Shown here piece after piece: positions 24,729 to 56,958 of a DNA stretch of 64,000 nucleotides (within the stretch, counting starts at the first letter, position 1; the number at the start of each line of letters is the position of its first letter). Under the pieces are notes generated by a model. It made no database searches. It saw only the letters and a list, made by a program, of their open reading frames with translations, and had not been told where the DNA came from. This DNA comes from Octopus sinensis. Lineage: Eukaryota. Position numbers and translations under genes: made by a program. The stretch spans positions 101,060,001 through 101,124,000 of the forward strand of contig NC_043002.1 of assembly GCF_006345805.1 (NCBI RefSeq), read 5' to 3'.

Positions 24729-24866
24729 GGTGTGTAGGATGTATGGTGGAGGGCAAATGCCGCGCACCCAAAGAGTCATGGATGGAAAAGAAGGGAAATA
24801 CGTGTGCCACGAAACGCTGTCAACCTAAGGTTAACAAAACATGGAGAGTGTATACACAAAAAGTGT
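24729..24866 (+). CDS. Gene A exon 3: Cys module 1
   Basis: tacag|GG...GTGT|gtaagt, phase 1-1, 138 nt. Encodes (G)CVGCMVEGKCRAPKESWMEKKGNTCATKRCQPKVNKTWRVYTQKV, with Cys spacing identical to 53754-53888. Confidence 0.9.
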
Positions 24867-25195
24867 GTAAGTTGACTAAGATAACTTTTTGCTTCCTCTC
24901 TTCACTACATGTTTTAAAACAGCATGACACCAAGAAACGTTTGTATTTGCATTCTTTTAAATGTGATAGGCCTTGTTTGGTAAGAGTTCATTACTGATCA
25001 TCAACCAGGGTTAACTGTGAGGCTCCAACACACAGACGGTTATATCAACCCCAGATTCTCGGTTTATTCAATTTGATTGACGAAAGGCAATGTCCAACAC
25101 AGAAGGGTTTGAGCTTAGTACGTAAAGAAAGTTAGCTAAATATGACAAAGCATTTTGGTAGGCGCACTAACGACTCTGGTGAGTTGGTAGACTAT

Positions 25196-25428
25196 AAGGC
25201 GGCGAGCTGGCAGAATCGTTAGCACGCCGGGCGAAATGCGTAGCCGTATTTCGTCTGCCGTTACGTTCTGGGTTTAAATTCCGCCGAAGTCGACTTTGCC
25301 TTTCATCCTTTCGGGGTCGATAAATTAAGTACCAGTTACGCACTGGGGTCGATATAATCGACTTAACCCGTTCGTCTGTCCTTGTTTGTCCCCTCTGTGT
25401 TTAGCCCCTTGTGGGTAGTAAAGAAATA
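25196..25428 (+). mobile_element. Full-length tailed tRNA-derived SINE
   Basis: A box TGGCAGAATCG, B-box-like gggtttaaattc, core gtcgactttgcctttcatcctttcggggtcgataaattaagtaccag, tail gtgtttagccccttgtgggtagtaaagaaata. Confidence 0.9.
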
Positions 25429-25994
25429 TATTTAGCAGGCCGAAGAAAATGTTTGGGTGCATTTCGTCCGGATTCTAAATTTAAATCTCGCTAAATTCAA
25501 TTTTATTTTTCATCCCTTAGTCGTCGAAATTTAAGGTGCCAGTCAAATATCGAAGTCGATGAAATATACTAGTTCCCTCTCCTCAAAAATTGCTGACATA
25601 AAAACCTTTGGCGGATAGATCTCCCGTTCACAGAGAAATTGGTTAAACGCCATGGAAGCTGGGTAACCAGTGTTATGAATCCTAGGGTTAAAAACGAATA
25701 GATAAGTTATTCCCATACGAGTTTCATCCCTAATGTAGCAATCATATCAGTATGAATATCGTCGGCGGCTAAAACATTTTTTGCTGCAACTCAATAACAT
25801 CACGATGCTAAATTTAATCCATTTTCAGAATTGGCAACTAATTACTTTTCAAGTCTTTTTTGAACGATCAGATGTCAGTTTATTTGCAAAGAAGACCCAA
25901 AAAACAATGGAGTTAGTAATACAGAGTTAAAAGTTAAGCATGATATATTTTACAGCCCCAGTATTATTCTAAAACTTCTCGGCCCATCATTGTA

Positions 25995-28835
25995 TTGTTT
26001 ATTTTTATTTATTTTTTATTTATTTTATTTTATCCAGTTTCAGCTCACAAGCTGTGGCCATGCTGGGGCACCGCCATTTGGTGCTGCTACATGATTTTAC
26101 TTCACGAATGCTTTTTAGCAATTGCCATTTGGTGCATGAGAGAGTTCGATGCAGCTGCCCTCATCTGCACCTCCTGCCGTGAAGTAGGTTCATCTGGGAC
26201 ACCTGAAAAGAAGAGATCCAGTTTTATTTTAAAGACATCTGCATCCACCCCATGCAGGTCTCATAGGTTCTTCGGGAGGATATTGAAGAGCTGTGGGCTT
26301 CGGAAGCCCTGGCTATCACAGTATCTTGTCCTACATCTTGATGGCAAATTTGGAGTCATTGGCACTATGCAGTGGCGCCCAGTTCTGGCATTTGTGTAAC
26401 TCTCGATGCCAAAGTTTGGGACAAGTCCTTCTAGGATCTTCCAGATGTATATTATGGCATATCTTTCTCGCCTACGCTCTAAGGATTAGAGTCTCAATCT
26501 CTTGAGTCTTTCCCAATAGCTTATATGCTGTTCAGAGGCTATCTTCGTGTAGCTTCGTTGGATCGCCTCAAGTTCTGTGATTAACTTGACACTGGATGGT
26601 GACCATAGCTGAGAGCAATAGTCAAAGTGGCTTAGGACAGGTGTCCTCCAGAGGACCATCATGGTTTCCTGGTCTATTGTTCTAAAGGTTCTAAGAATCC
26701 ATCCGATCAGCCGCCTACATTTCATTGCCAATTTAGCAACATGCACATGAAAGGTTGCATCATCACTCATGTAAATACCCAGGTCTCGCACTGATTGTGC
26801 CTCTGGGATTGCAATCCCTCCAGGTCCAGTGTATTTATTGGGTATTGCATTTAGTTTTGCATGCTGATAGCATAAAGCTTGAAACTTTCAGCATTGAACT
26901 GCATGCTATTCTTTTCAGCCCACCTGTATATTTTGTCCAGCTCACATTGCAGGTGCTTAGTGTCTTCAGGGTTCTGTATTGCCTGTGAAACTTTTGTATC
27001 ATCTGCATAACTGGTGATTGTGGCTATCTGCGTGGCTGAGAGCATGTCTGAGAGGGCCATTATGAACAGTAGTAGTCCCAAAACAGTGCCTTGCGGAACA
27101 CCGCTCACTATTTGCGTGTTAATGGAAGTGGCATCATTGGCTACTACCACCTGACTTCTATCCTTCAGAAAGTCATGAAGCCATTCTCCCAATTTTCCAA
27201 CTATGCCAAGATCACGCAGTTTGTGACATATCATTCCATGATTGACTTTATCAAAGGCCTTTGCAAAGTCGAGATATATGACTTCCACATTTGAGTGGTT
27301 GAGCAGTCGTTTCAGCACCCAGTCATAGTGTTGTAAGAGCTGAGTTAAGCAGCTTCTTCCTGGTCGGAAACCATGTTGGGTGTCAGGCAGCAAGTCATTT
27401 TCTTCAAGGAAGGTGATTAGTTTCCTTCTGACTATTCGTTCCATGACCTTGCTGATGTGTGAGGTCAGAGAGATAGGTCTGTAGTTCTTGGCCTCCGCTC
27501 TGCTACCTCCTTTACGAATAGGGCATATTTTACCTTCCTTCAGTTTTCTTGGAAGTTTGCCAGTTGCAAGGAAGCTCTGAAAGAGGAACTGCAGTGGTCT
27601 TGCTAGGACTCTCTTACATACTTTTTGAAGGATTGCTGGGAATCCATCGGGGCCAGTAGCTGAGTTTGTTTTCATTTCATCAATAGCCTTTATTACATCG
27701 TCTTCCTTTATATTGATGTAATCAATCATCGCTGCCTCTGCTTTTATATCTGCAGTGGTAAAGAAGTCAGTTGGATTGCTGACTTGAAAATGCCCTAGGG
27801 ATGGAGGGAAAATACTCTTGAATTGCTCATATGGTATTTCACTTACCCTCATTGGATTTCCTGTGAGTGTGCCATCCTTTTCAAGGAGTGGCCCTATCCT
27901 ACAGTGCACCGTAGCTGTTACTTTGGCATACCTGTAGAAAGCTCTGGGGTTAGATTTTATGTTGTCTATAGCCCAGGCTTCTTTGTCTGGTCTTTCTTTT
28001 TCATGGGAGAGTTGCAGACATTTTTCAATTTCCAATAGTTTTATTTTCAGGCGGGACTTTTCACTGTTTTCAATTTGTTTGTTTAGGCGATTTGAAACTT
28101 TTGTACGCTGTCTCATTAGAATTTTCCTCTCTCTGGGGATTTTGCTTTTGTGTACAGTAGCCTTTCTCTCTGGGACACATTTGTAGCATAAAGCTTGCAT
28201 TACAGACATGAATTGTTGAAGTTTCATGTCGATGTCTGGCGAGGAGAAACATTCAGGCCAGTTTTGTTTGAGGATCTCTTTCTCAATTTGTTTCCAGTTT
28301 GCCTTATGGAAGTTCAAGCTGGAAAGATTCTGAGAGTTTCTTGTAGGCTGCATGTCCATGCTTTCCTTTGGCCCGTACATGGTCAGCTCTACCATGTTGT
28401 GATCCGAGAGTAGTGTCGGTGTAACTTTCACATTATGGATAAGATCCATATTATTTGTGAAGCAGAGATCCAGTATGTTACCTGCCCTGGTTGGTTGGAG
28501 TATTACTTGCTCCATGTACAGAGTGTTGATGAGGTTCAGGAGGGACCTCGCCTGTCCTCGTTCACATCGTGTCATTCCTGGGAGAGAAAGGCCCTCGGAC
28601 CATCTGACATTGGGTAGTTTGAAGTCTCCCATAAGAAATACACTTATGTGTTGTTCTTATGTGACTAGAACTTCTATTTTTATAAGGCAGTCTTCAAACT
28701 TGCCTATATGGCTGGGGGCATCTGGAGGGCGATATGTAGCACACACAACTACACCAAGTTGCCTTATATATACAATTAGTGTGTCACACACCGAATTTGA
28801 GTATGATAAAAGGACCTGGGGTATATGTACATATC
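25995..28835 (-). mobile_element. 5'-truncated CR1/L2/Jockey-group LINE, antisense in gene A intron 3
   Basis: APE end (YRPP at ~28735, MGDF, SDHN), RT, C-terminal HFDYCSQLWSP, and an (AAAT)n-like tail at ~25998-26033. Confidence 0.9.
26851..28632 (-). CDS. LINE ORF2 segment (APE C-terminus + RT), 593 aa open
   Basis: KNYRPISLTSHISKVMER, QHGFRPGRSC, YLDFAKAFDKV, GVPQGTVLG, YADDTK. Confidence 0.88.
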   Translation of the reverse strand: MGDFKLPNVRWSEGLSLPGMTRCERGQARSLLNLINTLYMEQVILQPTRAGNILDLCFTNNMDLIHNVKVTPTLLSDHNMVELTMYGPKESMDMQPTRNSQNLSSLNFHKANWKQIEKEILKQNWPECFSSPDIDMKLQQFMSVMQALCYKCVPERKATVHKSKIPRERKILMRQRTKVSNRLNKQIENSEKSRLKIKLLEIEKCLQLSHEKERPDKEAWAIDNIKSNPRAFYRYAKVTATVHCRIGPLLEKDGTLTGNPMRVSEIPYEQFKSIFPPSLGHFQVSNPTDFFTTADIKAEAAMIDYINIKEDDVIKAIDEMKTNSATGPDGFPAILQKVCKRVLARPLQFLFQSFLATGKLPRKLKEGKICPIRKGGSRAEAKNYRPISLTSHISKVMERIVRRKLITFLEENDLLPDTQHGFRPGRSCLTQLLQHYDWVLKRLLNHSNVEVIYLDFAKAFDKVNHGMICHKLRDLGIVGKLGEWLHDFLKDRSQVVVANDATSINTQIVSGVPQGTVLGLLLFIMALSDMLSATQIATITSYADDTKVSQAIQNPEDTKHLQCELDKIYRWAEKNSMQFNAESFKLYAISMQN

Positions 28836-28948
28836 TCGAGCTTTAAAGTTTGTTTTCACATAACTGAAATTAATTGCATAATATGAAAATTTAGATTAGT
28901 GATTTAAAAAATTAATGGCTTGATTATATCTCAGAAGTGTCACCTCCG

Positions 28949-29019
<71 letters not shown>

Positions 29020-29041
29020 TGTGTTTTCTTATCAACAAAAG

Positions 29042-29184
29042 CGTGTCTGAAAGAAGATGGCACGTGTGTTGGAAAAGGTACAACCTGGACGACCATGAAA
29101 GGCGGAAAATGCTGGCATTATGAGTGCATAATTTCACCACTTAACCAAGTCCAAATTTCATCAAAACAAGTTGGAAAGTGTTAA
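29042..29184 (+). CDS. Gene A exon 4: Cys module 2 and stop
   Basis: ttttcttatcaacaaaag|CG. Encodes (S)CLKEDGTCVGKGTTWTTMKGGKCWHYECIISPLNQVQISSKQVGKC*, TAA at 29182-29184, donor GTAAGT at 29190. Spliced protein is 116 aa. Confidence 0.88.
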
Positions 29185-29417
29185 GAAAGGTAAGTATATA
29201 TTTTAAGCTATTTAATTTAGCTTATGTGCATTTTCTCCATATCGCTGTTGTGTTATCCTTGTAACAGCCGTCTTCTTCCCTTCTACCTCTAATTCCAGTT
29301 AGCTTTCATTCAAATGTGAAAAGACAGTTGTAATCTTTTCCAGTTAAATGTTTCAAGTGACAAACCATAGAAATCCATTCTTTGTTTTAAGTTTTAATGT
29401 ATCTGTTTCTTTTTCAG

Positions 29418-29640
29418 GGCAGTCTATGACGGACTGCTCTCTATTTCTTAAGTAGCGCAGAAATACAATTGAAAGTCTTTTATCTATAACATGTTTCATA
29501 GTTTACATGATTGCGGCCATCTTGAATAGTTTAGTTGAACAAATAGACGCCAGTACTGTACTTATAAATTTTAAGTGTAGTTCTTAGTCTACCGGTGTGA
29601 GTGTGTCAGACCACTAAGACCTAAATAAATTGACATCGAT
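29418..29640 (+). other. Gene A exon 5 (3' UTR); 3' end approximate
   Basis: Acceptor ctgtttctttttcag at 29417; the 228-nt intron is conserved with gene B; AATAAA at 29624-29629. Confidence 0.6.
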
Positions 29641-29672
29641 CGACAAGTGTCGGAAGTGAGAAATACAGACAC

Positions 29673-30075
29673 CAGGAGTGGCTGTGTGGTAAGTAGCTTG
29701 TTTACCAACCACATGGTTCCGGGTTCAGTCGCACTGCGTGGCACCTTGGGCAAGTGTCTTCTACTATAGCCTCGGGTCGACCAAAGCCTTGTGAGTGGAT
29801 TTGGTAGACGGAAACTGAAAGAAGCCCGCCGTATATATGTATATATATATATATGTGTGTGTATGTATGTGTGTCTGTGTTTGTCCCCCTAGCATTGCTT
29901 GACAACCGATGCTAGTGTGTTTACGTCGCCGTCACTTAGCGGTTCGGCAAAAGAAACAGATAGAATAAGTACTGGGCTTACAAAGAATAAGTCCTGGGGT
30001 CGATTTGCTCGACTAAAGGCGGTGCTCCAGCATGGCCGCCGTCAAGTGACTGAAACAAGTAAAAGATTAAAAAGA
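29673..30075 (+). mobile_element. tRNA-derived SINE with internal (TA/TG)n (fourth family); second copy at 47510-47935
   Basis: Head ggagtggctgtgtggtaagtagcttg...ggttcagtc; 3' part gcggttcggcaaaaga...gactgaaacaagtaaaaga is shared with 47790-47935. Confidence 0.82.
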
Positions 30076-30084
30076 GTATATACA

Positions 30085-31450
30085 TACTAGCAAACGCACC
30101 CGTCCTTCAGACGGTTTAAGTTGCTTTCGTAGTATTTTCTTCTCCAAATAATTGAACTACCGAGAAGGCTTATGTGTAGCACGGTAATCTGTTTCCGATT
30201 AACCTAGGAACGGAAAATCAAATTGAAGGCTGGTTATTGTGGAGGTAGTTGCACTTTTAATGATCACAGAACATAGAAGTTTGCAAGCCATGTAAAGTAG
30301 AGCTACTGAAGTGTTTTGGGAGTAGATTACAGATAATGACTACAAAATATAGTTGTTTTACATGAAATCAAAATTTCTTGCCAGAAACAGCCACATAAAT
30401 GGTGTAAGGAAATTGAAGGAAAATGTTGAAACTTCCCCTCTGCGAGTTTATTTTTTTCAACAGCAATGGGGGCTATTTTTTTCGGAGGGAAAATCTAACA
30501 AAAGCCCCTATATTCTATCTTCCCACATAGCATGCACATAAACTAACAACGAATGCTGCATAAAGTTAATTGGTATGGAGCTTCCTGAAAGATACGTATA
30601 GCTTTCGCTGGTGGAAGCAAAACTTTTATTTAAAGGTTGATTCTTTGGAACGAACCATATGTGAGTGTTTAAAAAAAGTTTGGTATTGGATATTCCTCAC
30701 GTATAGTTTTCCTAGTCAACTGAATCACCGTCGTAAGTGGACAGCAGAAATAAATAGACAAAATCCCTTCACTTTTATAAAAAGATTGGTCACCGGCAGC
30801 TTGCATGAGCTTGCTAGCGCTTTGGCTTAATAAGTTTATGCAGCCGTGAAAAAAATCGATAATGCTTTTGCAGCAAAGTTGCTGCTCACACCGATGACGT
30901 CATTTGAAGCGTTACGTGCTAGGAAACATTCAACATTCTTGTTTAATTTTCAAGCTTTTTCGACCTTAAAAGCAAAATTTCGCGTCGACTAAAAATGTGC
31001 ATTATAGCCCTTCTCAAGTGCTACATACAGATGTAATTTTATTTCCTGAAAAGGCTTACAATGTGATCAGAAAAAATTTAAAAGTAAACGAGGGCAAAAA
31101 GCATTCGTATTTCACAATGAAAAATGTATGCTTAGTAGCCGGAATTTTGCGACAAAATGCATGATTATAAAGCACAACAGCCTAAAGTGCATGCTGTTGG
31201 GCGTTAGATGCCAATCGCGCCAATCTGGAGGGGCTTAGAGCCCCCTTGAATCGATAAAAAATCACTCTTCTCATCATAGCAACCGCATCTTTCCAGATGG
31301 CAAGTTTTAAGCTACTCAACTCTCTGCCTCATTACGCCTTCTATGCCTGTTTCAATTTTCAGCTCGATCCGACCAAACTGGTATGCCCACCAAACTCTGA
31401 CGTAGTAAAATGGGCACACAATTTTGACCCAAAGCCTCTGTTTTATATAT
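30085..31450. mobile_element. Possible non-autonomous Helitron-like element
   Basis: Starts actagcaaacgcacccgtc and ends ctgtttttatatatata, with internal small hairpins. Boundary motifs only. Confidence 0.3.
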
Positions 31451-31794
31451 ATATATTCAGATGAATATGCTAATTAAGTTGAGGCACCAGAATTGTGTAC
31501 GGTACTATCCATACAATTACAAAATAAGGTGATTAAAATCAAAATAAGCAACAAGGTTAACCAGAGGCAATGCTGTTCGATCGTTTCGTGCAACTCTATT
31601 TAATTGGACAATGCAATCATTATATCAATTTAAAATGTAGAGCAATCTTCAGCTGCACAAAGACATAGAACTTAATTAAATTAGAACAGATGGATACATT
31701 AGTATAATTATACCTAAAAATCTCTAAAAAGTTAAGGAGATAGACAAAGGGCATGTTGTAATTACAACAGCATAGCCGTAACTAAACATTTTCA

Positions 31795-33830
31795 AGAAGA
31801 CACTGCCTGTCACTGATTTTTTATGGGGTAATTCTTAATTTATAAACTAGTTTATCAAATCCCTTGTATATTTAAGGCTGAGAGAAACAAAGGGCAGTAT
31901 CCGATTAGGGTAGTGTTAAGGGAGTAAACAGACATTCTAGATGGTATAGTCATTAAACTCAAGATTTATTAGAAGCAATGTCATGAGGTTCAGTAAGGGA
32001 AAACTTAAAATAAGATGTTAGCTGATAATTAAGGAATGCCCTCTTGCAGACTATTGATAATGAAACAGAGGATAAACTTCTGGAAAGCTTTACAGATTTA
32101 TAGAGTTCCACTGATGGACTTGATCTGTAGTCTTCGAATTAGCTTTCTACTTTCTGGTTTTGAGAAGCCTGATTCTTCAAGATTGGTAAATAAGTGGTGC
32201 GTTACATATCCCAGGGCCCTAATACTTATAGGTATAAACCTGAACTTGTAATCTGGTTAGAGTAACTGCAGATATCTCAATAGTTCAGCATAGGTGTTCT
32301 CTTTTTCACTGTTTTCATGGTGTTCTCTTGTTCTCTTTCGTGCTTACATTTTATTGAGGTCTTCACTGGTACATTCCCCCAGTATTCCTTTCTATTATGA
32401 GTGGCAATGGCTTCTACCGTATTGCGGGTTCTTGTTTGTTTATCCTCTAGATTATCCTCCCGACAGATTTCATTACAGAGTGTCCTAGCTACATCACCAT
32501 GTCTCAACGGTAGATAATACCCTGATGACATTTTCGGGCAACTGCTTTTGATGTGGGTGATACCTTCAATGTGAACCTCACAAAGTCTGCATCGGTTGTC
32601 ACATTTTATGGTTTTTCCTGCATCGGTATCCATTTTGTGCATCAGGTACTTGGTTGATATTTCCTGTTCCTGGATTGCTATCTCATATCCTTCAAAGTGG
32701 GAGGTAGTAATCCGGGTACTGGTCAATGATAAACTGCTTTGATGATCGATATTACTATTATCACGAAACCGTCTAACAGCATATCCATGCATAGTCTTCC
32801 GCTCATATAGTCTCATCCTTTCATTTCATGATACGTTGCGGTAGAGTCATGCAACGTCTTTGAGCTTGTATTTTACGTTACCAGACAAAGAGTGTTGCTC
32901 AAGGAGCTGCCTTCCAAGTCTTATGGTGTTATCAGCCTCATTTACGGAAACTTGGTCAAGGGAAGCACTTCGAAACTTGGGGATTAAAAATGTTGCCGAA
33001 GGGATATGATGCGACATTCAAAGGCATTTTAGATCGATGTTAAGCCTCTGCCGCATTGTTTTCGTTTTAGGTAGGGGCGGTCTACGTTACTGTTTACGTG
33101 GAAATTATGCGAGCTTGTTATTATTTTCTAGGTTTTCACATCAATGGCTCGGATCTTATCAAGCAGCCCAAATGTTGGTATGTGTACTGGCACTGCAAAC
33201 ATATTGTGGGTCGCTGTTTTATTGAAAGCAGAGAGTTCTGAACTCCAAACTTTCTTTATTCCGCTGTAATATTCTTTAATGATACGTGTTTTGTTACAGG
33301 TGCCATGGTAAATTAGATTTCCATCTATCCCTAGACACCTGTAACATTCCTTGTCAGATACAAGGTAAACAGTTAAATCATTATCGGAGATGTTACTGGT
33401 CTGGTTTATAGTTTTCCCCCTTTTCACAATCATATATCAGCATTTATCCTCACCAAACTCCAACCCTACATCATTTGAGAATGCTGTAATTAGCTCAAGT
33501 CTCTTTTACATCTCATGCATATTCTTTGCATTGAGTTTTTAGTCATCCACCAAGAGACAGTGTGTAATTTTTTTGTATTTCTGTTTCCTTGTGAATCAGT
33601 GAAACACCCTTTCTTAACATGAATGACAATGGGTTTACAGGAAGTATAAAAAACATTACAGAGAATCTGTCCACTTGGAATACGCCTTTCCGATACTGTA
33701 TTATATCGGTGATAATACAATCACTCTTTCTCTTTAATTTCAAGATGGTAGTCCACGATGAAGTCAGGTTAGCTATGGCTTTGATTATTCTCACTGGAAC
33801 TTTAACAAGTTGAAGGTCTTCTAGCGTCCA
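31795..33830 (-). mobile_element. Degenerate R4-like LINE 3' half (RT end, CCHC, RLE, 3' UTR)
   Basis: CDNRCRLCEVHIEGITHIKSSC..YYLPLRH, PDYKFRFIPISIRALGYV, SSELSAFNK; 3' UTR 31795-32060. Confidence 0.85.
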
Positions 33831-36044: not shown

Positions 36045-37465
36045 TGATTTAATGAAATTAAACAGGATCGAAACGATCAATGCTTTAGCCATACCAGTCG
36101 TGACTAACAGTTTCAATATCGTTTACTGGTCAATTACTGAAATATGTAATCTTGACAGAAAAATACGAAAACTGTTGGCAATGCATAGAATGCACCACCC
36201 TAACGCAGATATAGAACGACTTTATCTGTCAAGAAAAGTGGGAGGCCGTGGACTTTTACAACTGGCAATAACAATGACAATTGCTACAATTGGCCTAGAC
36301 ACCTACCTGAAAAACCCTGAGGACTGGATGTTAAAACTTGTCTCAAAACATGAAAACAAGAAAGCATCATACTCAGTAACAAAACAGGCAAAGGAATATC
36401 TAAGTGAATTCCGAATACAATAAGTTTCGGAATTAGACATACAAGAAACAAGCACAGAAAAAGCTAAGCGCATGAAAACCCGTGCTAAAACTGCTGCCTT
36501 AGATATTCTGAATGATAAATGGCAAGAAAAACCTCTCAATGAGAGCGAATAATGCAGATGTTGACAAATGCCTTACCCATCAATGGCTAATGGCCTCTGG
36601 CGTAAAATCTGAAACAGAAGTGTTTATCATAGCAGTCCAAGATCAATGCCTACCTACAAGCAACTACCAGGCCAACATATTATAGACCGGCAGTAGCCCA
36701 ACATGTCGTGTATGTCAAGAACAAAATGAAACCATTGATCATGTTGTCTCCAAGTGCAATCTTCTTGCGCCTACAGAGTATCTCAACAGGCATGATAGAG
36801 CTGCACAATATATTCACTGGGTAAGTTGCAAAAGCCTGGACTTGCCTCATGATAAAAACTGGTGGGGACGCAAACCACCTCTAGTGCTTGAAAATGACCA
36901 CATCTCACTCCTCTGGAACTTCACTATTCAAACTGACAGAAGGATAGATGCGAATAGGTCAGAATTCATAGTAAAAGACTTCAGACAAAAAAAAAAACAT
37001 GCCTCCTCATTGATATGACTGTCCCAATCGATATAAACGTATCTGTCAAGACCTACCAAAAACTGAGCAAATATAAAGATCTTGAAATAGAAATCAGCAA
37101 AATGTGGAACCTGAAGACTAAAACAATACCTGTTGTCATAGGTGCCCTGGGAATGGTAGCAAAAGGGGCTGATCGCTACCTAACTCAGATACCGGGAAAC
37201 CCCAAAATGGCGGAAATTCAAAAGATAGTGCTCATGGGAACTATTCATATCCTACGCAAAATACTTTCTATGTAATCTCAAGTTTTAAAAGAAACATAAT
37301 TTTCGTATGGCTTTTTAGACATTCACTATTACAACACTGAGAACAAAACCAAATATATGGCACCCTAGGCATAACACCAACACGAACATCCAACTTGTTG
37401 TCTCTTGAGGTCTCTGGGTGAGACTTGGAGACAGCTTGTGCTAATGTAATGCAAAAGTCAAACAT
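36045..37465 (+). mobile_element. 5'-truncated R4/Dong-like LINE ending at an (AAT)n tract
   Basis: NRIETINALAIPV, RKVGGRGLLQL, CRVCQEQNETIDHVVS.C..YL.RHD, RLE C-terminus IPVVIGALG..VLMGTIHILRKILSM* (37275). Confidence 0.9.
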
Positions 37466-37469
37466 AGAA

Positions 37470-37480
37470 TAATAATAATA

Positions 37481-37566
<86 letters not shown>

Positions 37567-37590
37567 TTAATAATAATAATAATAATAATG

Positions 37591-37666
<76 letters not shown>

Positions 37667-37689
37667 TGATGATGGTGATGATGATGATA

Positions 37690-37768
<79 letters not shown>

Positions 37769-37810
37769 CAATAATAATAATAATAATAATAATTATAATT
37801 ATAATAACAA
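37470..37810. repeat. Compound (AAT)n-(GAT)n-(AAT)n microsatellite
   Basis: Direct reading. Confidence 0.97.
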
Positions 37811-39192
37811 TAAACATTATTTTAGTGCTGAAAGCAAAGAAAATATCTTTTGCTTCAGAAGCAAGGTCTTCGGGAATATATCTCTTGCTGATCACCTTCC
37901 ATACAAACACAAATGATCCAGACTAGCTTACTTGAAAGAAAACTGTGAGGTAAAGCGTGCAAGCATACCAAGAAGAGAGTTGTTGATTTTCAGGTTGGGT
38001 TGAAAACCATATGCTAATGTGTTTAGATTTATTAAGGATGGGAAAGAGAGAGAGAGGGAGTACCAGAGAAATACATCTAAGAGAGAAAGATGGCCAGTTT
38101 AGTCTCCGTTGGTCAGCGTTCTTGAAGTCACACATAAATTCTGCCACTTCTGCATTTAATACATCCCAACCCTGTTATTATCATCTGGTCTTCATCTCTG
38201 CACCACTCACAAGAGTATACACTTGTAAGCAATTGTCCATTTCTCCCATAATGCCATTTTCGTTTCTCGTTTGCTCAGAATTATCTGATACATCTTCGTG
38301 GGTAACCTTGCTACAGATGGTGTCTCGATAAAAATACCGGTCGGTGGCAAGCTAAAATCGCGCCTCATTTATGAGAGAAAATGCTAACGATAACGGTGTG
38401 AAAGGGACTAGAGCCAATGCTGGAGATGCCGCGTCTAGCAGGTGTCCCATTTTGCAACGGGGTGAGCCGGATTGTAATGCAAATAAAACAGTGGCAGAAG
38501 GTATGGGATTGAAGATGCATGAGAAGAGAGCATTGACGGAAAGAAAAGGAAATAAACAATATTGGAGGAAAAGGAAAATGTAAAAAGTTACAAGTTTCCT
38601 GAGCAGTTTAGTGTCGATACTTGACAGAAGAAGGAAAGAAGAATTGAAAAAATGATGGGAAATTTGAATAAAGGAAGAAGTATGATGTTGATACCAAAAG
38701 GTCTGAATATTGTGACTTCTGAGGGTTTTATCGATTATTTCTGAGACTTGTGTACAATCAATAAAGAGAAACTTTCATAGGGCAATTTATCTCCGTGTCA
38801 CAATGCTCCAGTTTTAAGGCAACGATTATATCGTGCCTTTTAAGTTGCTGAAGTAAGCTTTTAAAAACACTGAATTTGCAAGAAAATTAAAGCTTTGAAA
38901 CATGTGTCATCTAAAAACTGACTTAGGTTTCTATATGTGAGTATCTGTCTATCTCTCGATCGATTTATCTACGATGTTATCCTTTGTGTTGTGTGGATCG
39001 GTGCAAACTTGTTTTTTTTTTTTTTAGTTCAAGTGCAGAAGAAGAAACAATTGTTTCCACTTCTGTGCTAGCCATAAAAAGTCTATAGTTGTCAGCTAGT
39101 ATTTTATAAAATGTCATTATTATCCGATTCAGGTTTTGCACTGAGATATATTGTCAGCGGCTGTTTATTAATATTGGAGATGTTACGTTCGT

Positions 39193-39262: not shown

Positions 39263-39526
39263 GTAAGTGAACTTCTAAAAAGTATCTTATTTTTATAGAA
39301 TTTGTATGAAATGTTTACATGACTGTTTTGCAGTATAACTTAAATATGATTTTAACAACTGAATTTGTTCGTCAGTGTCTCCTTATAAGTCACGAGAAAC
39401 GCCCATAATATAAAGTTACTGGCATTATGTTCCTTTGATTTTGTTGGTAAAGAACAGAATATATAAGGTTTATATTTAGACTAAATACTGTTTCTGTTTC
39501 TGTATGAGAATATATATCCGTGCGTT

Positions 39527-39592
<66 letters not shown>

Positions 39593-39613
39593 CATCCATC
39601 CATCCATCCATCC

Positions 39614-39656
<43 letters not shown>

Positions 39657-39673
39657 AACCTACCTACTGTCCT

Positions 39674-39704
<31 letters not shown>

Positions 39705-39779
39705 CGTCCGTCCGTCCATCCGTCCGTCCGTCCGTCCTTCCATCCATCCATCCATCCATCCATCCATCCATCCACCTAC

Positions 39780-39854
<75 letters not shown>

Positions 39855-39856
39855 CC
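39527..39856. repeat. Compound tetranucleotide microsatellite (TCTA/TCCA/TCTG/TCCG)
   Basis: Direct reading; same intron-1 position as the pure (TATC)n at 18370-18441 in gene A. Confidence 0.95.
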
Positions 39857-40312
39857 TAGTCATCCATATCTATATATCATCACAATACTGCCAAAATACC
39901 GCATGGATTTACGTAGAATTCTAACCGAGGACCTGTACCTTCATGCAAATAACGACAAACACCCATATTCTCTGCAAAAAGATGAGTTCTGAAATATTAT
40001 TATCCTGCATTTATTCTTCTTTACCTTTTGTTTTCTTATTTACTTCTTTATTCTTCTATTTACTCTTTAAATGCTCTATTTTATTCATTATAAAATTGTA
40101 GATTTATGTGAATGTGCGTGTGTATATATATGTATATATATATACATCTATATATACATATATATACATATATACATACATATATATATATGTATATATA
40201 TGTATATATATATATATACATATATTTATATATATATATATATATACATATATATACATATATACATACATATATATATATATGTATATATATGTATATA
40301 TATATATACATA

Positions 40313-40348
<36 letters not shown>

Positions 40349-47050: not shown

Positions 47051-47509
47051 AATGATGGATATCGTTTGTGAACGGGCGACGCCGACTCGGAACCCACCTT
47101 GGACGCGAATGAGGTGTAGGTGATGGCGGAGGATACGGGCAGAAGCGATGTTGGGAGGAATAGTGACAAGAGGTAGGAAAACCTCAGTGTTATATTGTGT
47201 ATTGTATGTTTTTGTGTGTAAGAGGCTTAGCGCCCTAATTTTTAAATAGACTATTAAGTACAATAATTGTAAGAACTGAAGTAAGAGGTTCAATACCTCG
47301 CTTTGTTTTGTTGTTTTTTTCAGTGTAAAAGAAAGCTAATTATGTTTTAGAGGAGCAAAAAGTCGGCGGGCGTTTTTTGTCTTCTCCCATTAATATCATC
47401 CTTTTTTCATCATTCAATCAATGTTTTTGTCCAGCCCGCAAGCTACTCTGTGTCATGGATTTATGGCAAAAATTTTGAAATAAAGTAGATTGCTTACCAA
47501 CTACGTGTT

Positions 47510-47612
47510 TCCGTGTTCAGCCGCGCTGGATGACACGTTGGGCAAGTATGTTCTACTATACCCTTGGGCCGACCGAGTGGATTTGATAAACGGAAAGTGA
47601 AGGAACCCCATC

Positions 47613-47692
<80 letters not shown>

Positions 47693-47935
47693 GTGTGTGT
47701 GTGTGTGTACTTGCGTGTGTGTCCGTGTTAGTCCTCCCCCACCATCGCTTGAGAACCAATTTTCGTGCGTGTACGTCGCCATCAACTAGCGGTTCTTCAA
47801 AACGACAAAATACACCGATAGAATAAGCACTAGGCTTAGAAAGAATAAGTCCTGAGGTCGATTTCTTCTAAAAAAAAGGAGGTGCTCCAGTATGGCCACA
47901 GTGAAATGACTGAGACAAGTAAAAGAATAAAAGAA
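47510..47935 (+). mobile_element. SINE, same family as 29673-30075
   Basis: Shared ttgggcaagt...gaaagtgaagg..ccc.tcgtatata and gaataagtcctgaggtcgattt...gagacaagtaaaaga. Confidence 0.78.
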
Positions 47936-48541: not shown

Positions 48542-48602
<61 letters not shown>

Positions 48603-48693: not shown

Positions 48694-48729
48694 CTTTCTG
48701 TAGAAAAGCGTAGGCTCGAAACGTAAAAG
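48694..48729 (+). ncRNA. Minimal hammerhead-like motif in a Penelope-type terminal repeat
   Basis: CUUU-CUGUAGA-A-AAGC[guag]GCUC-GAA-ACGU-A-AAAG. Stem I pairs and stem III is palindromic; core A6>U and a stem II mismatch. Confidence 0.55.
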
Positions 48730-48819
48730 ACTTTTTCTATTCCTGTGCGTTATACTAATACATCTGTTTGTTTTGTACACCACCTGTCTTCGTCTTTTGT
48801 TGTTTTTTTCGTAAACTCT

Positions 48820-48880
<61 letters not shown>

Positions 48881-49066
48881 CAGAGAGATACATATAGATG
48901 TAGATATATATAGAATTTAGAGACAAACCGCTATTTAGTTATTCTATCAATACTGAAACGATATTATCGATAATACTCACATAGAAATTAATTAAATATA
49001 TTATAATTATTAATCTAAAAATCACAAAACAAATCAAACATTAAATCGACTGTATATATATAAATT

Positions 49067-49590: not shown

Positions 49591-50026
49591 TTAATTATAT
49601 TATATATATGCATGCTAATATATGACCTACGTTGGACTTCTCATTCGCATAATCACCGAACCTGAAGATTAACTAATGTCTGTCCATAGCACTTACTCAG
49701 CATTACCTGACCCCTTTGGGTCTTCTTGACACCATGACCTCCCATAACCTATATATATATGTACATACATACATACATAAATACATACATACATACATAT
49801 ATATATATGTATGGGTGCGTGTGTGTGTGTGTGTTTGTGTGTGTGTTTGTGCAGATAAACTTATATACACACTTAAATACATACAAACATATGCACACTC
49901 AAGCACATGCATGTATACTTATAAAATGCACACACATATCTACTTTCGTTGTTTCGCTTTTTCCTTGAAATTGAAAACAGTTTCTATTTCGATCCCGTCA
50001 AAATACCTTTGTACTTTCAGATCAAT

Positions 50027-50111
50027 ATGACACGACTACTTCTTGTTTTCGTGCTGCTTATGACTGCGATAACAATGGTTATGGCAGCATGCAAACCAGA
50101 TACAGATCATG
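50027..50111 (+). CDS. Gene B exon 2 coding part: signal peptide + short Cys-containing N-terminus
   Basis: ctttcag|atcaatATG; MTRLLLVFVLLMTAITMVMAACKPDTDH + G; phase-1 donor GTAAGT at 50112. Confidence 0.87.
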
Positions 50112-50276
50112 GTAAGTTACCAATTATATATCAAGATACTGAATAATTAAATTTTGAAAATTGCTTGAGCACCAAATCTTTTCCTTTATTCAGCCAATCA
50201 GTCTTTTCCTACTTTGATAGCAAAACTGTTGCCGGTGTATGGTTTCCATTGCCACGAATTGACAATTCATAAACAC

Positions 50277-50356
<80 letters not shown>

Positions 50357-50759
50357 GTACATATATATCTATGTATATATATATGTATGTACAGTACATG
50401 CATGCATACATTATTCACACCAGAAGAAGGATTTAAATGATTAAATTCAGAAAACACAGATACACATATATGTCTACAAATATACGTTTGTATGTGCAAA
50501 AGCAAATTATTTTAAATATATTGTTTACGTCAATTTCAACCAACCTTGCCGTATCTTTTAAATATTCCGTCAAATATTTATATTAATGTTGTGTGAAGTC
50601 TTTCTTCACAGCACGTTGTAAGTTCACCCAATTTGTACATAGAAAATGTAATATGGCGACTGATAAGCTCATCCATACGGTTCCGAACTGCGTCATTGTA
50701 AATAATCATATGACTACAGGACAAATTTAAGACAAGTTTTAACATTCAGTCATCAGAAT

Positions 50760-52050
50760 TTTACAGGTAGGTGTTTAGGCCAATTGTAGCAAACTTCATT
50801 GTTAATTCCAGTGTAAAAGTTCACGGCTTTAGCAAGTAAAGTCGTTCTATATCTGCCTTAGGGCGGTGCATTCTATTCATTGTTAAAGATTTCCATATTT
50901 TTTTTTTGTCAAGATTACATATTTCAATAATTGACCAGTTAATGACATTGAAACTGTAAGTCACGACCGGTAAGGCGGCTAAAGTATTGATCGCTTCGAT
51001 CTTGTTCTGCATTCAGCTCTCTCTTAACATTCTCTTCTGATCCTTTCCTTCATCATTGAATGTTTGATTCCATCACCGTCGCTGTTCTATTCTCAGTCGT
51101 TCTCAATCCCATCCTACTAGCAGCCTTGATAAGATTATTTGTTTGTGTGATGTTCTTTGTTTCGATGTGTCTCAGTACAATATTGACTTTATTCGTCTCT
51201 TATTTTAGTCTCCATTAGTTAGCCTTCTTAAAATCGCCAATAAATTCTGTCGCTTCCGTATTTAATAGATCCAAAATACTGTTTATTATTAATCGACCTT
51301 CATTATTTGAATAGCCACCGATCTCAATTCTTTCACAGTTCTCGGTATTATATTCTTGCGAACAACTTTTCAACTCTTCCACTTTACCACTTTCATTTCT
51401 CGCATGCTCAACCTCACCCGATATCCTTCTTTAAATAGCTTCTAGCTCCAATTCTGTAAACCATCCATTCTTTCGTAATTTCGAACAATTCCATTGCCTT
51501 CCATTCACTGTGTATTCGTTTCTTATACCTTCTAAAAGGCACCCAATTCGCCTTTTCTCATACTTCTCCTGTCGGTTTAGCAAAAGAGTCAACCAAGACT
51601 GCAGGACTCTTACTACCCATAAGTTGAACATGGTCCCTTCACATTTCTGTTGGGCACCATGATCATGATTCTCATTAGGAGATAGGTGAGCGTCAGTTGG
51701 TCCCGTATCTTCATCTAAATATTGCACCGGAGATTAAGTCCCGATTGGTGGGTCATTCACCTTCATCCTAGGCATGGAATCATTGGACACTGACAGGTTG
51801 TCACTCCTGTGACTAAGGACTCCTATATAAGCCAGTTTAAAATCAGGCTCCTTCTCCTAGATAGACTGCCAACAAGGGATCACGAGTTCTATCTACCCGT
51901 TTTCCGAATGGCCATTGACTCTTCCTCTGCCCTTTTCCAGGATATGTTTTTAATCCTGCAGGAAGTTGAAATCCACCCTCCTCACCAAGCAAGCAAGCAT
52001 AGTGGGGTTGTCGGTTTAGTCGCCGACGACTCGACGGTTTCATAACGCCA
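50760..52050 (-). mobile_element. R4/Dong-like LINE remnant
   Basis: NKIEAINTLAALPVVTYSF..MNRMHRPKADIERLYL matches 36052-36423; N-terminal KNGWFTELELE segment. Confidence 0.75.
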
Positions 52051-52759
52051 CTTGTTAATCATTCTGGTTAATTCTTGTTCTCTATTACAATTTCACTATT
52101 ACTACTATAATCCTTATCTTATTACTTCCTAGTTTACTATTATAGTTCCACAATTATTGCTATAATTATATTATTACTATAAGGACGGGAAGTGTTAGTA
52201 TTGTCACACGTGATTTCTTTAGACAATAAATGATGGCAGATTTACGACTGTTGTAATTCTTTATTGCAGATTTACGACTGTTGGTTTAGCTACTGCTTCT
52301 GCGACGTTAAATAGAGGTCCGAGCATGTGTCTACTAATACAAGCTGTTTGATTGGACTGGTAGTTGATAAAGCTGGCGGTCGATTAAGGGTGGGTGGGAG
52401 GTAATTTTTGAGAGTAGCGTCGGCAAGTTGAGACTACCATAGCTAAGTTATCAAAGTTTATAGACAACATTTCACAGATTTAAGAAGCTAAGGTATTCTA
52501 TCTATAATCACCCCATCGTACTTACGTTTACGATTTTATTTATGGCAAATTACATCGTACTTTGGATATAAAAATCTATACAGATCTCAAAGATTTAGCA
52601 AACATAGAAAGTTCTAGAAAAGGCTTACACATTTTTGGAAGGAGTTGTTAAATGACCGTGTTGTCGTGTGAAGGATTTCAGCAGCACTGAGAACCCATTG
52701 TAAGAAGAGGGAGACGTAGAGGAATGGGTCAGGTAAGCTTGACAAAATCCCATTATTAT

Positions 52760-53428
<669 letters not shown>

Positions 53429-53753
53429 TTTATTTTTTAACCCTTCACACCAAGTCCTTTTGCTCTGCGCAAACCATGCAGGTAGGAGAAACCTTTGTAG
53501 AAGAACGTATCATTAAATTGCTATCACTATACTCTTCACACGTATTTGTGTTATCAAAACAGGACTGGCAAAAGAGGTAATGATACGACTGAATTTCATA
53601 TATGGATTAGAAGGAAGCAAAGGATATGATTTCAGTTGGATATTATTGGAAACATTTTTACCTTCTAGTTTATAAAAAAAGTACCTTCGAAAATATCCAC
53701 TGTACAAAAGTGCTGGATAGATATTATTATAATATACGTTTTTTTTTTTTTAG

Positions 53754-53888
53754 GGTGTAGAGGATGTTTCTACAAGGAAAAATGCCATGAGGAGGGAAGA
53801 AGATGGTTGGAAAAGTATTCCTATAAATGTGCCAGGAACGAATGCATGCGTATTGATGGTAAATTGCAAGTAGCTGAACGAGAAGTGT
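53754..53888 (+). CDS. Gene B exon 3: Cys module 1
   Basis: (T)13ag|GG...GTGT|gtaagt, phase 1-1, 135 nt. Encodes (G)CRGCFYKEKCHEEGRRWLEKYSYKCARNECMRIDGKLQVAEREV. Confidence 0.9.
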
Positions 53889-54179
53889 GTAAGTTGACAA
53901 AGAAAACTTTCGTTTCCTCTATTCACTACGTGATTTTATGTATCAAAATCCCAATGAAAGTTTATATTTGCTTTGCTGTGTTTTGAATGCGATAGGCTTT
54001 GTTCAGTAACTCTTAATTATTGAGCAGCGTTAACTGTGAGACTTATACACAGATAATATGAAGACATCTTGAATGGTTCGTAACAATTGTTTCTGTACCA
54101 AATCTGATTGTGATTCCAGTTTACGCAATAATCGAAATTAAGATTAACGCAGTGGTTCCGCTTTCAGAAGTTAATGTAT

Positions 54180-54526
54180 CACTTGCTGGTCTGGCATCTA
54201 CAGTCTAGTTTCAGGGTATTTGTCACTTATTAATGCAGAGCGGCTGTACCAGTCATGTGTCGCTACTGCGCCTGCCATGTTTCCTGACTGCTATGTTAAC
54301 TTGGCGATAACTATTAATAACAAGTACTGCTGCCGTAGTCTCCATTAGAGAGACTTAGAAATATTAATATTTCTATTTTTGAAAACCAGTGGATGTATTC
54401 CACTGAATTTAGGTAAATAATCCTTCAAAGAGACGGTCAGTAGCAACATCTGGGTGGTTCGGCTGCTCTGCATTGATAAGGGACAAATACCCTGAAATTA
54501 GTCTGTAGGTGCCAGACCAGTAAGTG
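54180..54526. repeat. Fold-back element: ~89-bp inverted arms around a ~170-bp spacer
   Basis: 54180-54268 versus reverse complement of 54438-54526, about 85% identical. Confidence 0.85.
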
Positions 54527-54799
54527 GAAGCGGCTGACTTCCCCTATTCAAAGTTTATAATGGACACAGGTTTGTGTGTTACATAACTAGCTAGAGGCAA
54601 CGGCCTCTTGGAGTTATTCAACGGCAGCATTCATCCTATTTTCCTGGACTGCCATATTAGCTTGGCAATAACAATATATACACACATACATACATACATA
54701 CATACATACATACATACATACATACAAATATACATACATACATACATACATACATACATACATACATACATACATACATACATACATACATACATTATG

Positions 54800-54849
<50 letters not shown>

Positions 54850-55278
54850 TGTATATGTATATGTATGTATGTATACGTTACAACTAAACGTATAACGATA
54901 CTATTATACAAACTGTGGTTCCATACACACAATTTATAATTAAAAGCTAGGCACACGTATTGATGCACACACTCTCTCGAATACGAATGCCTACATACGA
55001 CAACACCTCGACCCAAATAAGCACAAAAAATATACCCAAGTTACTTCCATAAATTTGATGCACAACACCTCTATTCTACGCTGTTACATTAAACTTCAGT
55101 CAATATAATATTCAGTTTTGTCATCATGTTAGCAGCCCTCCCAAAATCAACTAAAATTTAGAAAAGAACAACAGTCAGTAACATTATCTAGCGTGGCTTA
55201 ATCCGTAGTATTTTGTTCATGCGACATTGAGGACACATTAAGGTGTTCAGTAGGTTCACTAAAAGATAACTTTTATAA

Positions 55279-55990
55279 GGTGTGAAGGCGCGTGGCCTAG
55301 AGGTTACGGCAATTGGCTCACGGTCGTGAGTTCGATTATTGTCAGCGCTTTGTGTTCTTGAGCAAGACACTTTAATGCACGTTGCCGCAGTAGGTTCACT
55401 AAAAGATAACTTTTATAACCTTTCTACTTTAGGCAGAAGGCCTGAAATTTGTGGGGAGGGGAAAGTGGATTAGATCGACACCAGTACGCCAATGATACTT
55501 AATTCATCGACCCAGAAAGGATGAAAGGCAAAGTGAACCTCAGCGTAAATTGAACTCAGAACATGAAAACGGACGAAATACCGATAAGCATTGCGCCCGG
55601 CGTGCTTACGATTCTTATTTCTTTACTACCCACAAGGGGCTAAACACAGAGAGGACAAACAAGGACAGACAAACGGATTAAGTCGATTATATCGACCCCA
55701 GTGCGTGACTGGTACTTAATTTATCGACCCCGAAAATATGAAAGGCAAAGTCGACCTCGGCGGAATTGGAACTCAGAACGAAATACGGCTACGAATTTCG
55801 CCAGGCATGCTAACGTTTCTGCCAGCTCGTCGCCTTTGATAAATTTTATAACGTGTGAAGGAACGTGGCTTAATGGTTAGGGCATTCGGCTCATGGTCGT
55901 GAGTTCGATTCTTGGCAGTGTGTTGCGTTCTTGAGCAAGACACTTTAATTCACATTGTCCCAGTCCATTCAACTAGCAGAAATGAGTCTT
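55279..55990. mobile_element. SINE cluster: two + strand heads (55279-55387, 55853-55990), an old - strand SINE (55419-55614) and a tailed - strand SINE (55615-55836)
   Basis: tRNA-like heads gtgtgaagg..cgtggc...gagttcgatt; core and tail as at 25196. Confidence 0.82.
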
Positions 55991-56583
55991 ACCTGTAATT
56001 ATCATATTATGAAACACCCTCAGAACTAAGTTAAGGGCACAAAACTAAAACCCTCGATGTTGTGACCGGCGTAATGTCAGTTTTACCTATATACCCGAAT
56101 ATAATGCTTCCAAATACCTTTCATGTTACTGGTGTATATAGAAACAGAAATGTGTTCTACCTGTCCTTTAAAACCAGCAACAAACAATACAAACGAATAC
56201 TTTAATCTATTCCGATTTTAGGAATATGAACTCAATATCCAAAATGCGTAATAAGTTACGTTAAATGAATATATATACCAGAATATCACTAACTGAAACG
56301 ATGAGAGGGCAAAATAGTTAGCACGCCGGGCATTTTCGCTTACCGGAAATTTTAATGGCTTTCTGACTTGAATTCATACTTCTTCGAGGTCGGTTTTGTA
56401 TTCGATCCCTTCCAGACGGATAAAATAATTACCATTTAAGCATTAGAGTCATTGTAATCGACTTACCCGTTCCTCTGAAATTGCTGACATTTTGCCGAAG
56501 TTTTGGGCCAGTATAGGCATAATTATGTCACCGAAATAGTTTAAATAGAATAATCAATACAGTGATCGTTTTCTTATCAACAG

Positions 56584-56731
56584 ATTGTCGGTTCTTTAAT
56601 GCCCTATGTTCTAAGGGAAACACAGATTATATAACCATCAAAAATGGCAACTGCTGGAATCACACCTGCGTATATCATTCAAAATATCGCATTCAAGCCG
56701 ACGTGTCATATGCCGGAAAATGTTCACGTCT
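56584..56731 (+). CDS. Gene B exon 4: Cys module 2
   Basis: ttttcttatcaacag|AT. Encodes (Y)CRFFNALCSKGNTDYITIKNGNCWNHTCVYHSKYRIQADVSYAGKCSR; donor GTGAGT at 56732; Cys spacing identical to gene A exon 4. Confidence 0.88.
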
Positions 56732-56958
56732 GTGAGTATATATTTTAAGCTATTTGATTTAACCCATGTAGTATATTTTCTCCATATTACAGTTGCGTTG
56801 TCCTTGTAATTCTTCCTCTTCAGTTCTAAATTTTACTCCAGTTAGCTCGAATTTAGATGTGGAAATACAAATCTTAACATTTCCAGTAGAATGATAAAAC
56901 TGTTAAAATCGCTATTTTATATTTTTTGAAATTTAAAACGTGTCTGTTTCTCTTTCAG

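Follow-up and report, generated by a model that had tools for sequence, protein, structure and literature searches.

The question raised by this locus is why, in two neighbouring genes of Octopus sinensis, the protein-coding exons have diverged further than the introns that lie between them. The locus is a 64,000-nucleotide (nt) stretch of contig NC_043002.1 (assembly GCF_006345805.1, positions 101,060,001 to 101,124,000 of the forward strand), referred to below as the window, and the two genes, here termed A and B, encode small secreted proteins rich in Cys. Our answer, which we hold with a probability of roughly 0.74, is that recurrent diversifying selection on the residues outside the Cys scaffold of an octopus-restricted tandem gene family makes the exons outdiverge the introns. 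The phenomenon as such is already known, and it is the family that is new as a described entity.

Genes A and B are paralogues arranged in tandem on the plus strand, about 29 kb apart and in the same orientation, and tblastn searches with the exon peptides find these two copies and no others within the 64-kb window. Each copy comprises a signal peptide (SP) exon, two Cys-rich exons of about 46 codons and a short downstream intron, numbered 4, with all coding junctions in phase 1 and canonical GT-AG splice sites (Table 1). In the products, of 116 amino acids (aa) in A and 123 aa or more in B, the SP is followed directly by a mature part of about 93 residues with ten Cys, and the SP exon of gene A matches the signal peptide of the Octopus bimaculoides protein P0001, the orthologue of A. 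Since a conserved acceptor (tactttcag) precedes the SP exon, an untranslated exon 1 upstream of it is likely, in agreement with the exon numbering used by an earlier reading of this DNA, made from the letters alone and called here the original prediction.

When the two genes are aligned by codons, exon 3 is identical at 14/46 aa and 74/138 nt (54%) and exon 4 at 13/46 aa and 65/138 nt (47%), which amounts to 27/92 aa and 139/276 nt (about 50%) over the mature part, while the SP exon retains 5/23 aa. These counts reproduce, to within a residue or a codon, those from which the original prediction had concluded that coding exons diverge faster than introns (15/46 aa and 73/135 nt, or 54%, for exon 3, and 13/46 aa for exon 4). 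All ten Cys are conserved, nine of them with the same codon, and the same codon is kept at 12/14 conserved residues of exon 3, where 13/15 had been reported, and at 23/27 over the whole mature part. On the intron side, the first 42 nt of intron 3, put earlier at about 86% identity, are identical at 36/41 positions, and the start of intron 4, put at about 80%, reaches 86% over the first 50 nt and 82% over the first 57 aligned nt. The exons (139/276) set against the first 100 nt of all flanks (346/486) give Fisher p=1.4e-8 in a test that compares an ungapped codon alignment of the exons with a gap-optimised alignment of the introns. The comparison was therefore redone using a single free nucleotide aligner for exons and introns, with shuffle nulls. 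Exons then score 0.60-0.64 (null 0.55). Of the seven intron segments, each about 138 nt long, six reach 0.66-0.79 (null 0.55-0.58), most of them 72-79%, and the seventh is interrupted by a microsatellite in A; the contrast has Fisher p=0.002 with all segments and 3e-5 without the microsatellite-broken one. The A/B contrast is real yet moderate, and it is smaller than the quoted 42-nt stretches imply because intron identity decays with distance from the exon, being 0.79 within 50 nt, 0.62-0.69 between 50 and 300 nt, and equal to the null past about 300 nt.

Both genes belong to a family of unnamed secreted 10-Cys proteins of Octopus, some 95 residues in length and of the LOC106872057, LOC106872088 and LOC128248175 type. 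Gene A is 77-80% identical to the O. bimaculoides protein A0A0L8IDP9 (E 6e-43), with which phmmer retrieves nine further Octopus proteins (E 1e-25 to 9e-7), and B can be aligned with the family from end to end, every Cys in register. Exhaustive phmmer and family-profile searches, covering 1.84e9 and 5.8e9 proteins, recovered members from O. bimaculoides and O. sinensis only, all annotated as "uncharacterized"; Pfam gave no domain in family members, the PDB sequence search and the family-profile search gave no named family, and no paper on the family was found by locus name, UniProt identifier or topic. Eight genomic loci (L001-L008) were compared. The O. bimaculoides genes lie on chromosome CM046606.1 at 106.93-107.27 Mb, with at least nine loci within a cluster of about 340 kb. 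The exon plan and the splice motifs are common to all 11 genes examined (eight genes, two more and P0015), with the splice contexts gtaagttgac (6/8 genes), ttcttatcaacag and gt[ag]agtatatatttt, and all 11 keep an open frame, ten Cys and canonical splice sites. The ten invariant Cys that follow the SP are spaced C-x2-C-x5-C-x14-C-x4-C and then C-x6-C-x14/15-C-x4-C-x17/18-C. Averaged over the family, aa identity is 0.42 in the SP and 0.38 in the mature part, which follows the SP without a propeptide, so that the divergence of signal peptides noticed earlier between A and B extends to the family as a whole.

The intron stretches next to the exons, on which the original prediction had relied, could not serve as a neutral reference, as these splice-proximal elements show 74-86% identity between all paralogues, old pairs and young alike. 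This level of identity is seen in the opening 100 nt of intron 4 in all 28 gene pairs, whatever the divergence of the exons, and the donor context of intron 3, gtaagttgac[at]aaga, is common to six of eight genes, the exceptions being P0013, with gtaagttgccaaaga, and the pair P0003/P0008, with gtaagtta and then unrelated sequence. Judging from these alignments, such stretches would reflect constraint, not neutrality, and would sharpen the contrast near the exons. A block deeper in intron 2, 82% identical between the copies (23612-24218 versus 52752-53365), was also considered as a neutral yardstick, and was rejected because L002, L005 and L007 carry it at non-homologous sites, which marks it as a dispersed repeat.

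Conservation of this kind is what would be expected if the two genes were old duplicates drifting almost neutrally (omega, the ratio dN/dS of nonsynonymous to synonymous divergence, being about 1), with some 50-300 nt of exon-adjacent intron held by splicing or regulatory selection. The plateau at the start of intron 4 fits this relaxation of constraint, as does the fact that unique intron sequence is alignable only within about 300 nt of the exons and loses identity with distance, and the A/B omega, at 0.8-1.36 with dS of 0.8-1.0, is not significant. We nevertheless regard it as unlikely. Most of intron 3 cannot be aligned because of insertions, not saturation: a long interspersed nuclear element (LINE), units resembling short interspersed nuclear elements (SINEs) in both copies (25196-25431 in A, 55463-55837 in B) and microsatellites in both together account for much of the unalignable intron. 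Drift without constraint is also at odds with the open frames, ten Cys and canonical splice sites kept in all 11 genes, and it fits poorly with the comparisons between species described below.

Taken alone, the A/B pair says little about selection. Pairwise counting by NG86 gives dN 0.78, dS 0.98 and omega 0.8, and maximum likelihood (ML, GY94) gives omega 1.2-1.36, with a doubled log-likelihood difference (2dlnL) of 0.2-0.5 against omega=1 and a dS of 0.8-1.0, near saturation. The original prediction had itself named a dN/dS not above 1 together with saturated dS as grounds for giving up positive selection, and for these two genes this is what was found, omega, at 0.8-1.36, not differing from 1. 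Among the conserved A/B codons, 21/25 informative ones are identical where 11.7 would be expected at saturation (p about 1e-4); synonymous sites in conserved codons are unsaturated, and the true neutral distance is therefore modest. The dS fitted with a single omega is therefore inflated by multiple replacement hits.

The same apparent excess of exon dS (0.8-1.0) over intron divergence could be read as hypermutation targeted at the mature-peptide exons and sparing the Cys codons, as was once proposed for conopeptides, and the identity of nine of ten Cys codons between A and B does resemble the conservation of Cys codons in conotoxins (PMC3823881). Of the explanations weighed here we take this to be the least probable. 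Synonymous divergence is low at conserved non-Cys codons too, which fits a modest neutral distance with selection at the variable codons, and a single-omega model that absorbs multiple replacement hits explains the high pairwise dS better. Where dS is unsaturated, moreover, it equals the intron rate, as is seen in orthologues (0.18 versus 0.13-0.18 for B exon 4, 0.17 versus 0.07-0.12 for P0003/P0008).

Exon 4 of gene B has an orthologue in O. bimaculoides at the locus L002, in whose first 2.5 kb the flanks of the exon are 81-85% identical to, and collinear with, window positions 54841-57311; within this region, intron 3 of gene B (54841-55391 and 55837-56583) is 84-85% identical to the orthologous intron (L002 823-1997). 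Here whole introns align. Between the two exons only 23/46 aa are identical, with dN 0.42 and dS 0.18, and the intron divergence (K) over 1687 aligned nt is 0.13-0.18; nonsynonymous divergence exceeds that of the intron (Fisher p=4e-6), and synonymous divergence does not differ significantly. The comparison of dS with intron divergence that the original prediction had proposed is thus in favour of an intron-like silent rate exceeded by replacements, and a dN of 0.42 above both the dS of 0.18 and the intron K of 0.13-0.18 argues against relaxed constraint. In the second orthologue pair, P0003/P0008, dN is 0.13, dS 0.17 and intron K 0.07-0.12.

Codon site models, also proposed earlier, were fitted across the family with our own implementation of M0, M1a and M2a on neighbour-joining (NJ) trees, with 10-11 genes from three octopus genomes. 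For ten genes and 96 codons, M0 gives omega 1.45 (1.25-1.45 across the family), and M2a is preferred over M1a with 2dlnL 53.5; it assigns omega 3.4 to 54% of sites, omega 1 to 32% and omega about 0 to 14%, the last class being the scaffold. The preference persists with 11 genes (38.3), under F1x4 (31.6), without the window genes (29.1) and without the B clade (18.2, p=1e-4), so that M1a, which is the relaxed-constraint model, is rejected in five of five configurations (2dlnL 18.2-53.5). It was not rejected in 24 data sets simulated under the fitted M1a, the largest 2dlnL of this parametric bootstrap being 3.7. Taken separately, exon 4 gives a strong signal (2dlnL 27.3). A model fitted to the SP exon (2dlnL 44, omega2 11.5) was discounted, its alignment being short and gap-rich.

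Tandem copies 29 kb apart in the same orientation, with a sharp rise of identity at the exon-intron borders, are also the mosaic that gene conversion would be expected to leave if it homogenised the introns and the exons escaped, either by counter-selection or because heterology blocked the tracts, and the repeat block of intron 2 is surprisingly alike from one paralogue to another. This explanation is nonetheless very improbable. When the A/B flanks were compared with those of A or B and paralogues of other species, no sign of recent A-B conversion was found: identity in the 5' segment of intron 2 (i2_5p) is 0.76 for A/B versus 0.85 for A/P0013, and in that of intron 3 (i3_5p) 0.71 for A/B versus 0.86 for B/P0009. 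The A/B intron identity of 62-80% is too low for recent events, and the same excess of exon over intron divergence exists between orthologues of different species, a setting in which conversion among paralogues is no possible cause.

On the statistical evidence for the preferred explanation, diversifying selection, the ten Cys, the Trp and aromatic positions and a few Gly are held by purifying selection, and about half of the remaining positions are under recurrent positive selection. The orthologue comparisons show introns and synonymous sites evolving near the neutral rate, and replacement changes therefore build up 2-3 times faster than intron changes, with the result that exons end up more diverged than the adjoining introns. 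Short constrained elements near the splice sites would exaggerate the contrast close to the exons, and the tandem array itself probably evolves by birth-and-death duplication. The original prediction of positive selection around a fixed Cys scaffold is in this way supported by the family site models and by the B exon 4 orthologues, and the A/B evidence on which it had been based is insufficient for it.

Several points weigh against this reading. For the A/B pair, omega does not exceed 1 and dS is apparently saturated; with 46 codons, the omega of the B exon 4 orthologues, 2.35 by NG86 and 3.45 by ML, differs only marginally from 1 (p=0.06); for the other orthologue pair, P0003/P0008, omega is 0.8; and the site-model signal of exon 3 is weak (2dlnL 6.2, p=0.046). 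Part of the intron similarity is constraint, as shown by the 74-86% plateau that every pair of paralogues has where intron 4 begins. The site models were run with our own code, on NJ topologies and over a long tree (9-11 substitutions per codon), and recombination between paralogues, multi-nucleotide mutations or variation of dS among sites could inflate the test. A lesson for method is that an exon/intron contrast between two paralogues can be right for partly wrong reasons, which in the case of A and B were splice-proximal constraint, "intron" similarity derived from transposons, and saturated dS.

The two genes also differ at their ends. In gene A the stop codon TAA (29182-29184) stands just 5' of the donor gtaagt at 29190. 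A stop at this place, directly after the last Cys, is also present in the O. bimaculoides orthologue of B, and the corresponding codon of gene B itself is TCA (window 56724-56740). Conceptual translation suggests that the C-terminus of B would be extended by 54 residues through a putative exon 5 if intron 4 is spliced and would end in ...GKCSRL and a stop if it is retained. The conserved start of intron 4 occupies 29190-29290 and 56732-56830 of the window, has the same position in L001-L008 and begins gt[ag]agtatatattttaagctatttaattta...; its first 100 nt or so may form a constrained element, possibly steering retention versus splicing and hence the C-terminal tail. At the other end, the start codons differ in place by one codon, A (21842-21850) having ACG ATG CGA and B (50027-50035) ATG ACA CGA, the latter resembling an O. 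bimaculoides protein that begins with MTR. The O. bimaculoides orthologue of B exon 4 (L002 1998-2146, approximately 107,000,602-107,000,750 of CM046606.1) sits 8 kb upstream of LOC128248175 and is not annotated. Its frame is open, its splice sites are intact and it codes for five Cys, so annotation of the family in reference genomes is incomplete.

For structure prediction, P0001 and the nine-member family alignment were used in place of the spliced A and B proteins. AlphaFold2 returned an all-beta model with a mean pLDDT of 85, above 90 in the mature part, whose best PDB matches by Foldseek are pairs of fibronectin type I (FnI) modules (3ejh, 2cku, 3cal and 2rky), with a probability of about 1, E values of 2e-4 to 5e-2 and TM scores of 0.43-0.58 when normalised by target and 0.35-0.46 by query. 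Module 1 is weakly similar to module 2 (hhalign E=0.002), Cys to Cys and Trp to Trp in register, which suggests an internal exon duplication. At the level of sequence the likeness is not seen: the Pfam fn1 family (PF00039) has no match even at E <= 10 for A, B and nine family members, a PDB sequence-profile search gave no match, and Pfam VWC (PF00093) matches one of nine members below threshold (E=0.044), short of family membership. We therefore call the protein FnI-like in its predicted fold and do not assign it to the fn1 family; the likeness may be convergent or very remote. In the model the octopus modules are like FnI pairs and the FnI-like VWC subdomain in being all-beta and predicted to be disulfide-stabilised, about 45 residues long and with a conserved Trp. 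One module is encoded per phase-1/phase-1 exon, as is the case for the FnI modules of vertebrate FN1 and tPA. Unlike FnI modules, which have four Cys paired C1-C3 and C2-C4, those of the octopus carry five Cys each. Beta-microseminoprotein (PSP94/MSMB), a fast-evolving protein of about 94 aa and 10 Cys whose relatives include a squid contact pheromone, was considered as well and rejected, there being no PSP94 match at E <= 10 and no MSMB among the top 50 Foldseek PDB matches; the octopus Cys spacing, without CC or CxC motifs, also disfavours it.

Fast replacement around a rigid scaffold would suit extracellular binding or recognition modules engaged in an antagonistic or otherwise fast-changing interaction, and saliva or venom, mucosal immunity, reproduction and chemical signalling may be guessed at as roles. 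The combination of tandem arrangement, secretion, a confidently predicted fold and a strong signature of diversifying selection usually marks an interface with prey, pathogens, mates or conspecifics, and it therefore makes the family a good candidate for new constituents of octopus saliva or venom, for immune effectors or for chemical signals. A wider and considerably more speculative possibility, which we find doubtful, is that the family arose as a novelty of octopods, a set of hypervariable secreted binders, each of two FnI-like modules, serving as salivary or venom effectors, in mucosal immune recognition or as species- or mate-recognition signals, with paralogue-specific C-terminal tails switched by the conserved intron 4 element through retained versus spliced forms or through stop-codon shifts such as that in B. 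If true, this would be a new class of cephalopod effectors, and an FnI-like fold outside chordates that evolves like a toxin family.

Table 1. Positions in the window of the exons and introns of genes A and B and of repeats within them (SP, signal peptide).
Feature	Position	Strand	Remarks
Gene A SP exon	21845..21914	+	MRAFIFCLLVLAAEIAFNRTVNA and first base of split Gly codon; phase-1 donor gtaagt; acceptor tactttcag before
Gene A intron 2	21915..24728	+	first 50 nt 88% identical to B; last 300 nt 66-80%
Dispersed-repeat block, gene A intron 2	23525-24321		flanked by (ATT)n
Gene A exon 3	24729..24866	+	Cys module 1 (CVGC...QKV, 5 Cys); phase 1 at both ends
Gene A intron 3	24867..29041	+	alignable with B in first ~170 nt and last ~45 nt only
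Gene A intron 3, remainder			SINE-like repeat 25196-25431; LINE fragment 26851-28632 (minus); (CA)n(TA)n ~28960-29020
Gene A exon 4	29042..29189	+	Cys module 2 (CLKEDG...VGKC, 5 Cys)
Gene A intron 4 (intron of the 3' untranslated region)	29190..29417	+	first 50 nt 86% identical to B
Gene B SP exon	50027..50111	+	MTRLLLVFVLLMTAITMVMAACKPDTDH and split Gly; phase-1 donor gtaagt
Gene B intron 2	50112..53753	+	holds repeat block 52752-53428
Gene B exon 3	53754..53888	+	Cys module 1 (CRGC...REV); one codon less than A
Gene B intron 3	53889..56583	+	SINE-like insertion 55463-55837
Gene B exon 4	56584..56731	+	Cys module 2 (CRFFNAL...AGKC); donor gtgagt
Gene B intron 4	56732..56958	+	acceptor AG ends at 56958, also the end of the span given in the original prediction
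Gene B putative exon 5	56959..57121	+	translation only; stop ~57119-57121

The remainder of the window is rich in mobile and simple repeats. A LINE-type retrotransposon on the minus strand (5091-9156) has an apparently intact open reading frame (ORF), the 965-aa ORF2 with endonuclease and reverse transcriptase (RT) (5091-7988), which overlaps a 414-aa ORF1 with a CCHC zinc knuckle (7912-9156), and a second LINE on the plus strand (346-2176) has a fragmented RT; the higher G+C of the first 16 kb is due to these two elements. The LINE within intron 3 of gene A (26851-28632, minus strand) contains a 593-aa endonuclease/RT ORF and is largely responsible for the difference in length of this intron (4175 nt in A versus 2695 nt in B) and for its unalignable part. 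A repeat of about 0.7-0.8 kb bounded by (ATT)n occurs upstream of Cys exon 3 in most paralogues, and elsewhere too, with copies at 23525-24321 and 52752-53428 of the window, L001 20969-21692, L005 8744-9241 and L008 15707-16375. Its intronic copies are 80-92% alike, versus about 70% for the adjoining unique intron, and it may be an ancestral element homogenised by conversion or the product of repeated insertion at a preferred site. Two other dispersed repeats, a partly tandem unit of about 235 nt (3806-4377, 9691-9757, 25196-25431 on the minus strand, and 55463-55837) and an element of about 410 nt (29673-30086 and 47483-47934), are present in many copies of 75-95% identity in all octopus loci compared. 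Very long microsatellites (17580-20170, 37395-37830, 39460-40320, 59080-59460 and 61820-61930), of the types (TA)n, (TATC)n, (AAT)n, (GA)n and 9-nt periodic, dominate a repeat scan of the window and yield many spurious long ORFs.

Accelerated evolution of exons has been described in snake venom families, namely crotaline phospholipase A2 (PLA2) isozymes and three-finger toxins, including in the habu genome (PMC6062510). Like these, the octopus family forms a tandem array of small secreted disulfide-rich proteins with a fixed Cys scaffold, its exons outdiverge its introns and its replacement rate is at or above the silent rate. It differs from them in an unrelated fold and taxon and in an SP that is divergent too, and the A/B contrast is moderate (60-64% versus 72-79% with one aligner).

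Nearer in taxonomy are the conotoxin gene superfamilies, for which both the genomic features (PMC10561478) and the position-specific preservation of Cys codons (PMC3823881) have been reported. The octopus family is likewise molluscan and secreted, with a hypervariable mature region (27/92 aa), invariant Cys of which 9/10 keep their codons, one structural unit per exon and large introns. Unlike conotoxins, it has an SP that is not conserved (0.42 versus 0.38 for the mature part; 5/23 aa for A/B) and no propeptide, a much larger mature protein (about 93 aa, 10 Cys, two modules) and, between orthologues, a dS that is not raised over that of the introns.

MgCRP-I of Mytilus and other cysteine-rich peptide families of molluscs (PMC4558851, PMC10138031) offer a further comparison, since these too are lineage-restricted, secreted and Cys-rich, with a hypervariable mature region, invariant Cys and many paralogues; the octopus family is set apart from this type by its divergent SP, the lack of a pro region and its ten Cys in two modules. 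Cephalopod genomes hold many lineage-restricted genes of unknown role, and among these the octopus family is a compact and clearly delimited case.

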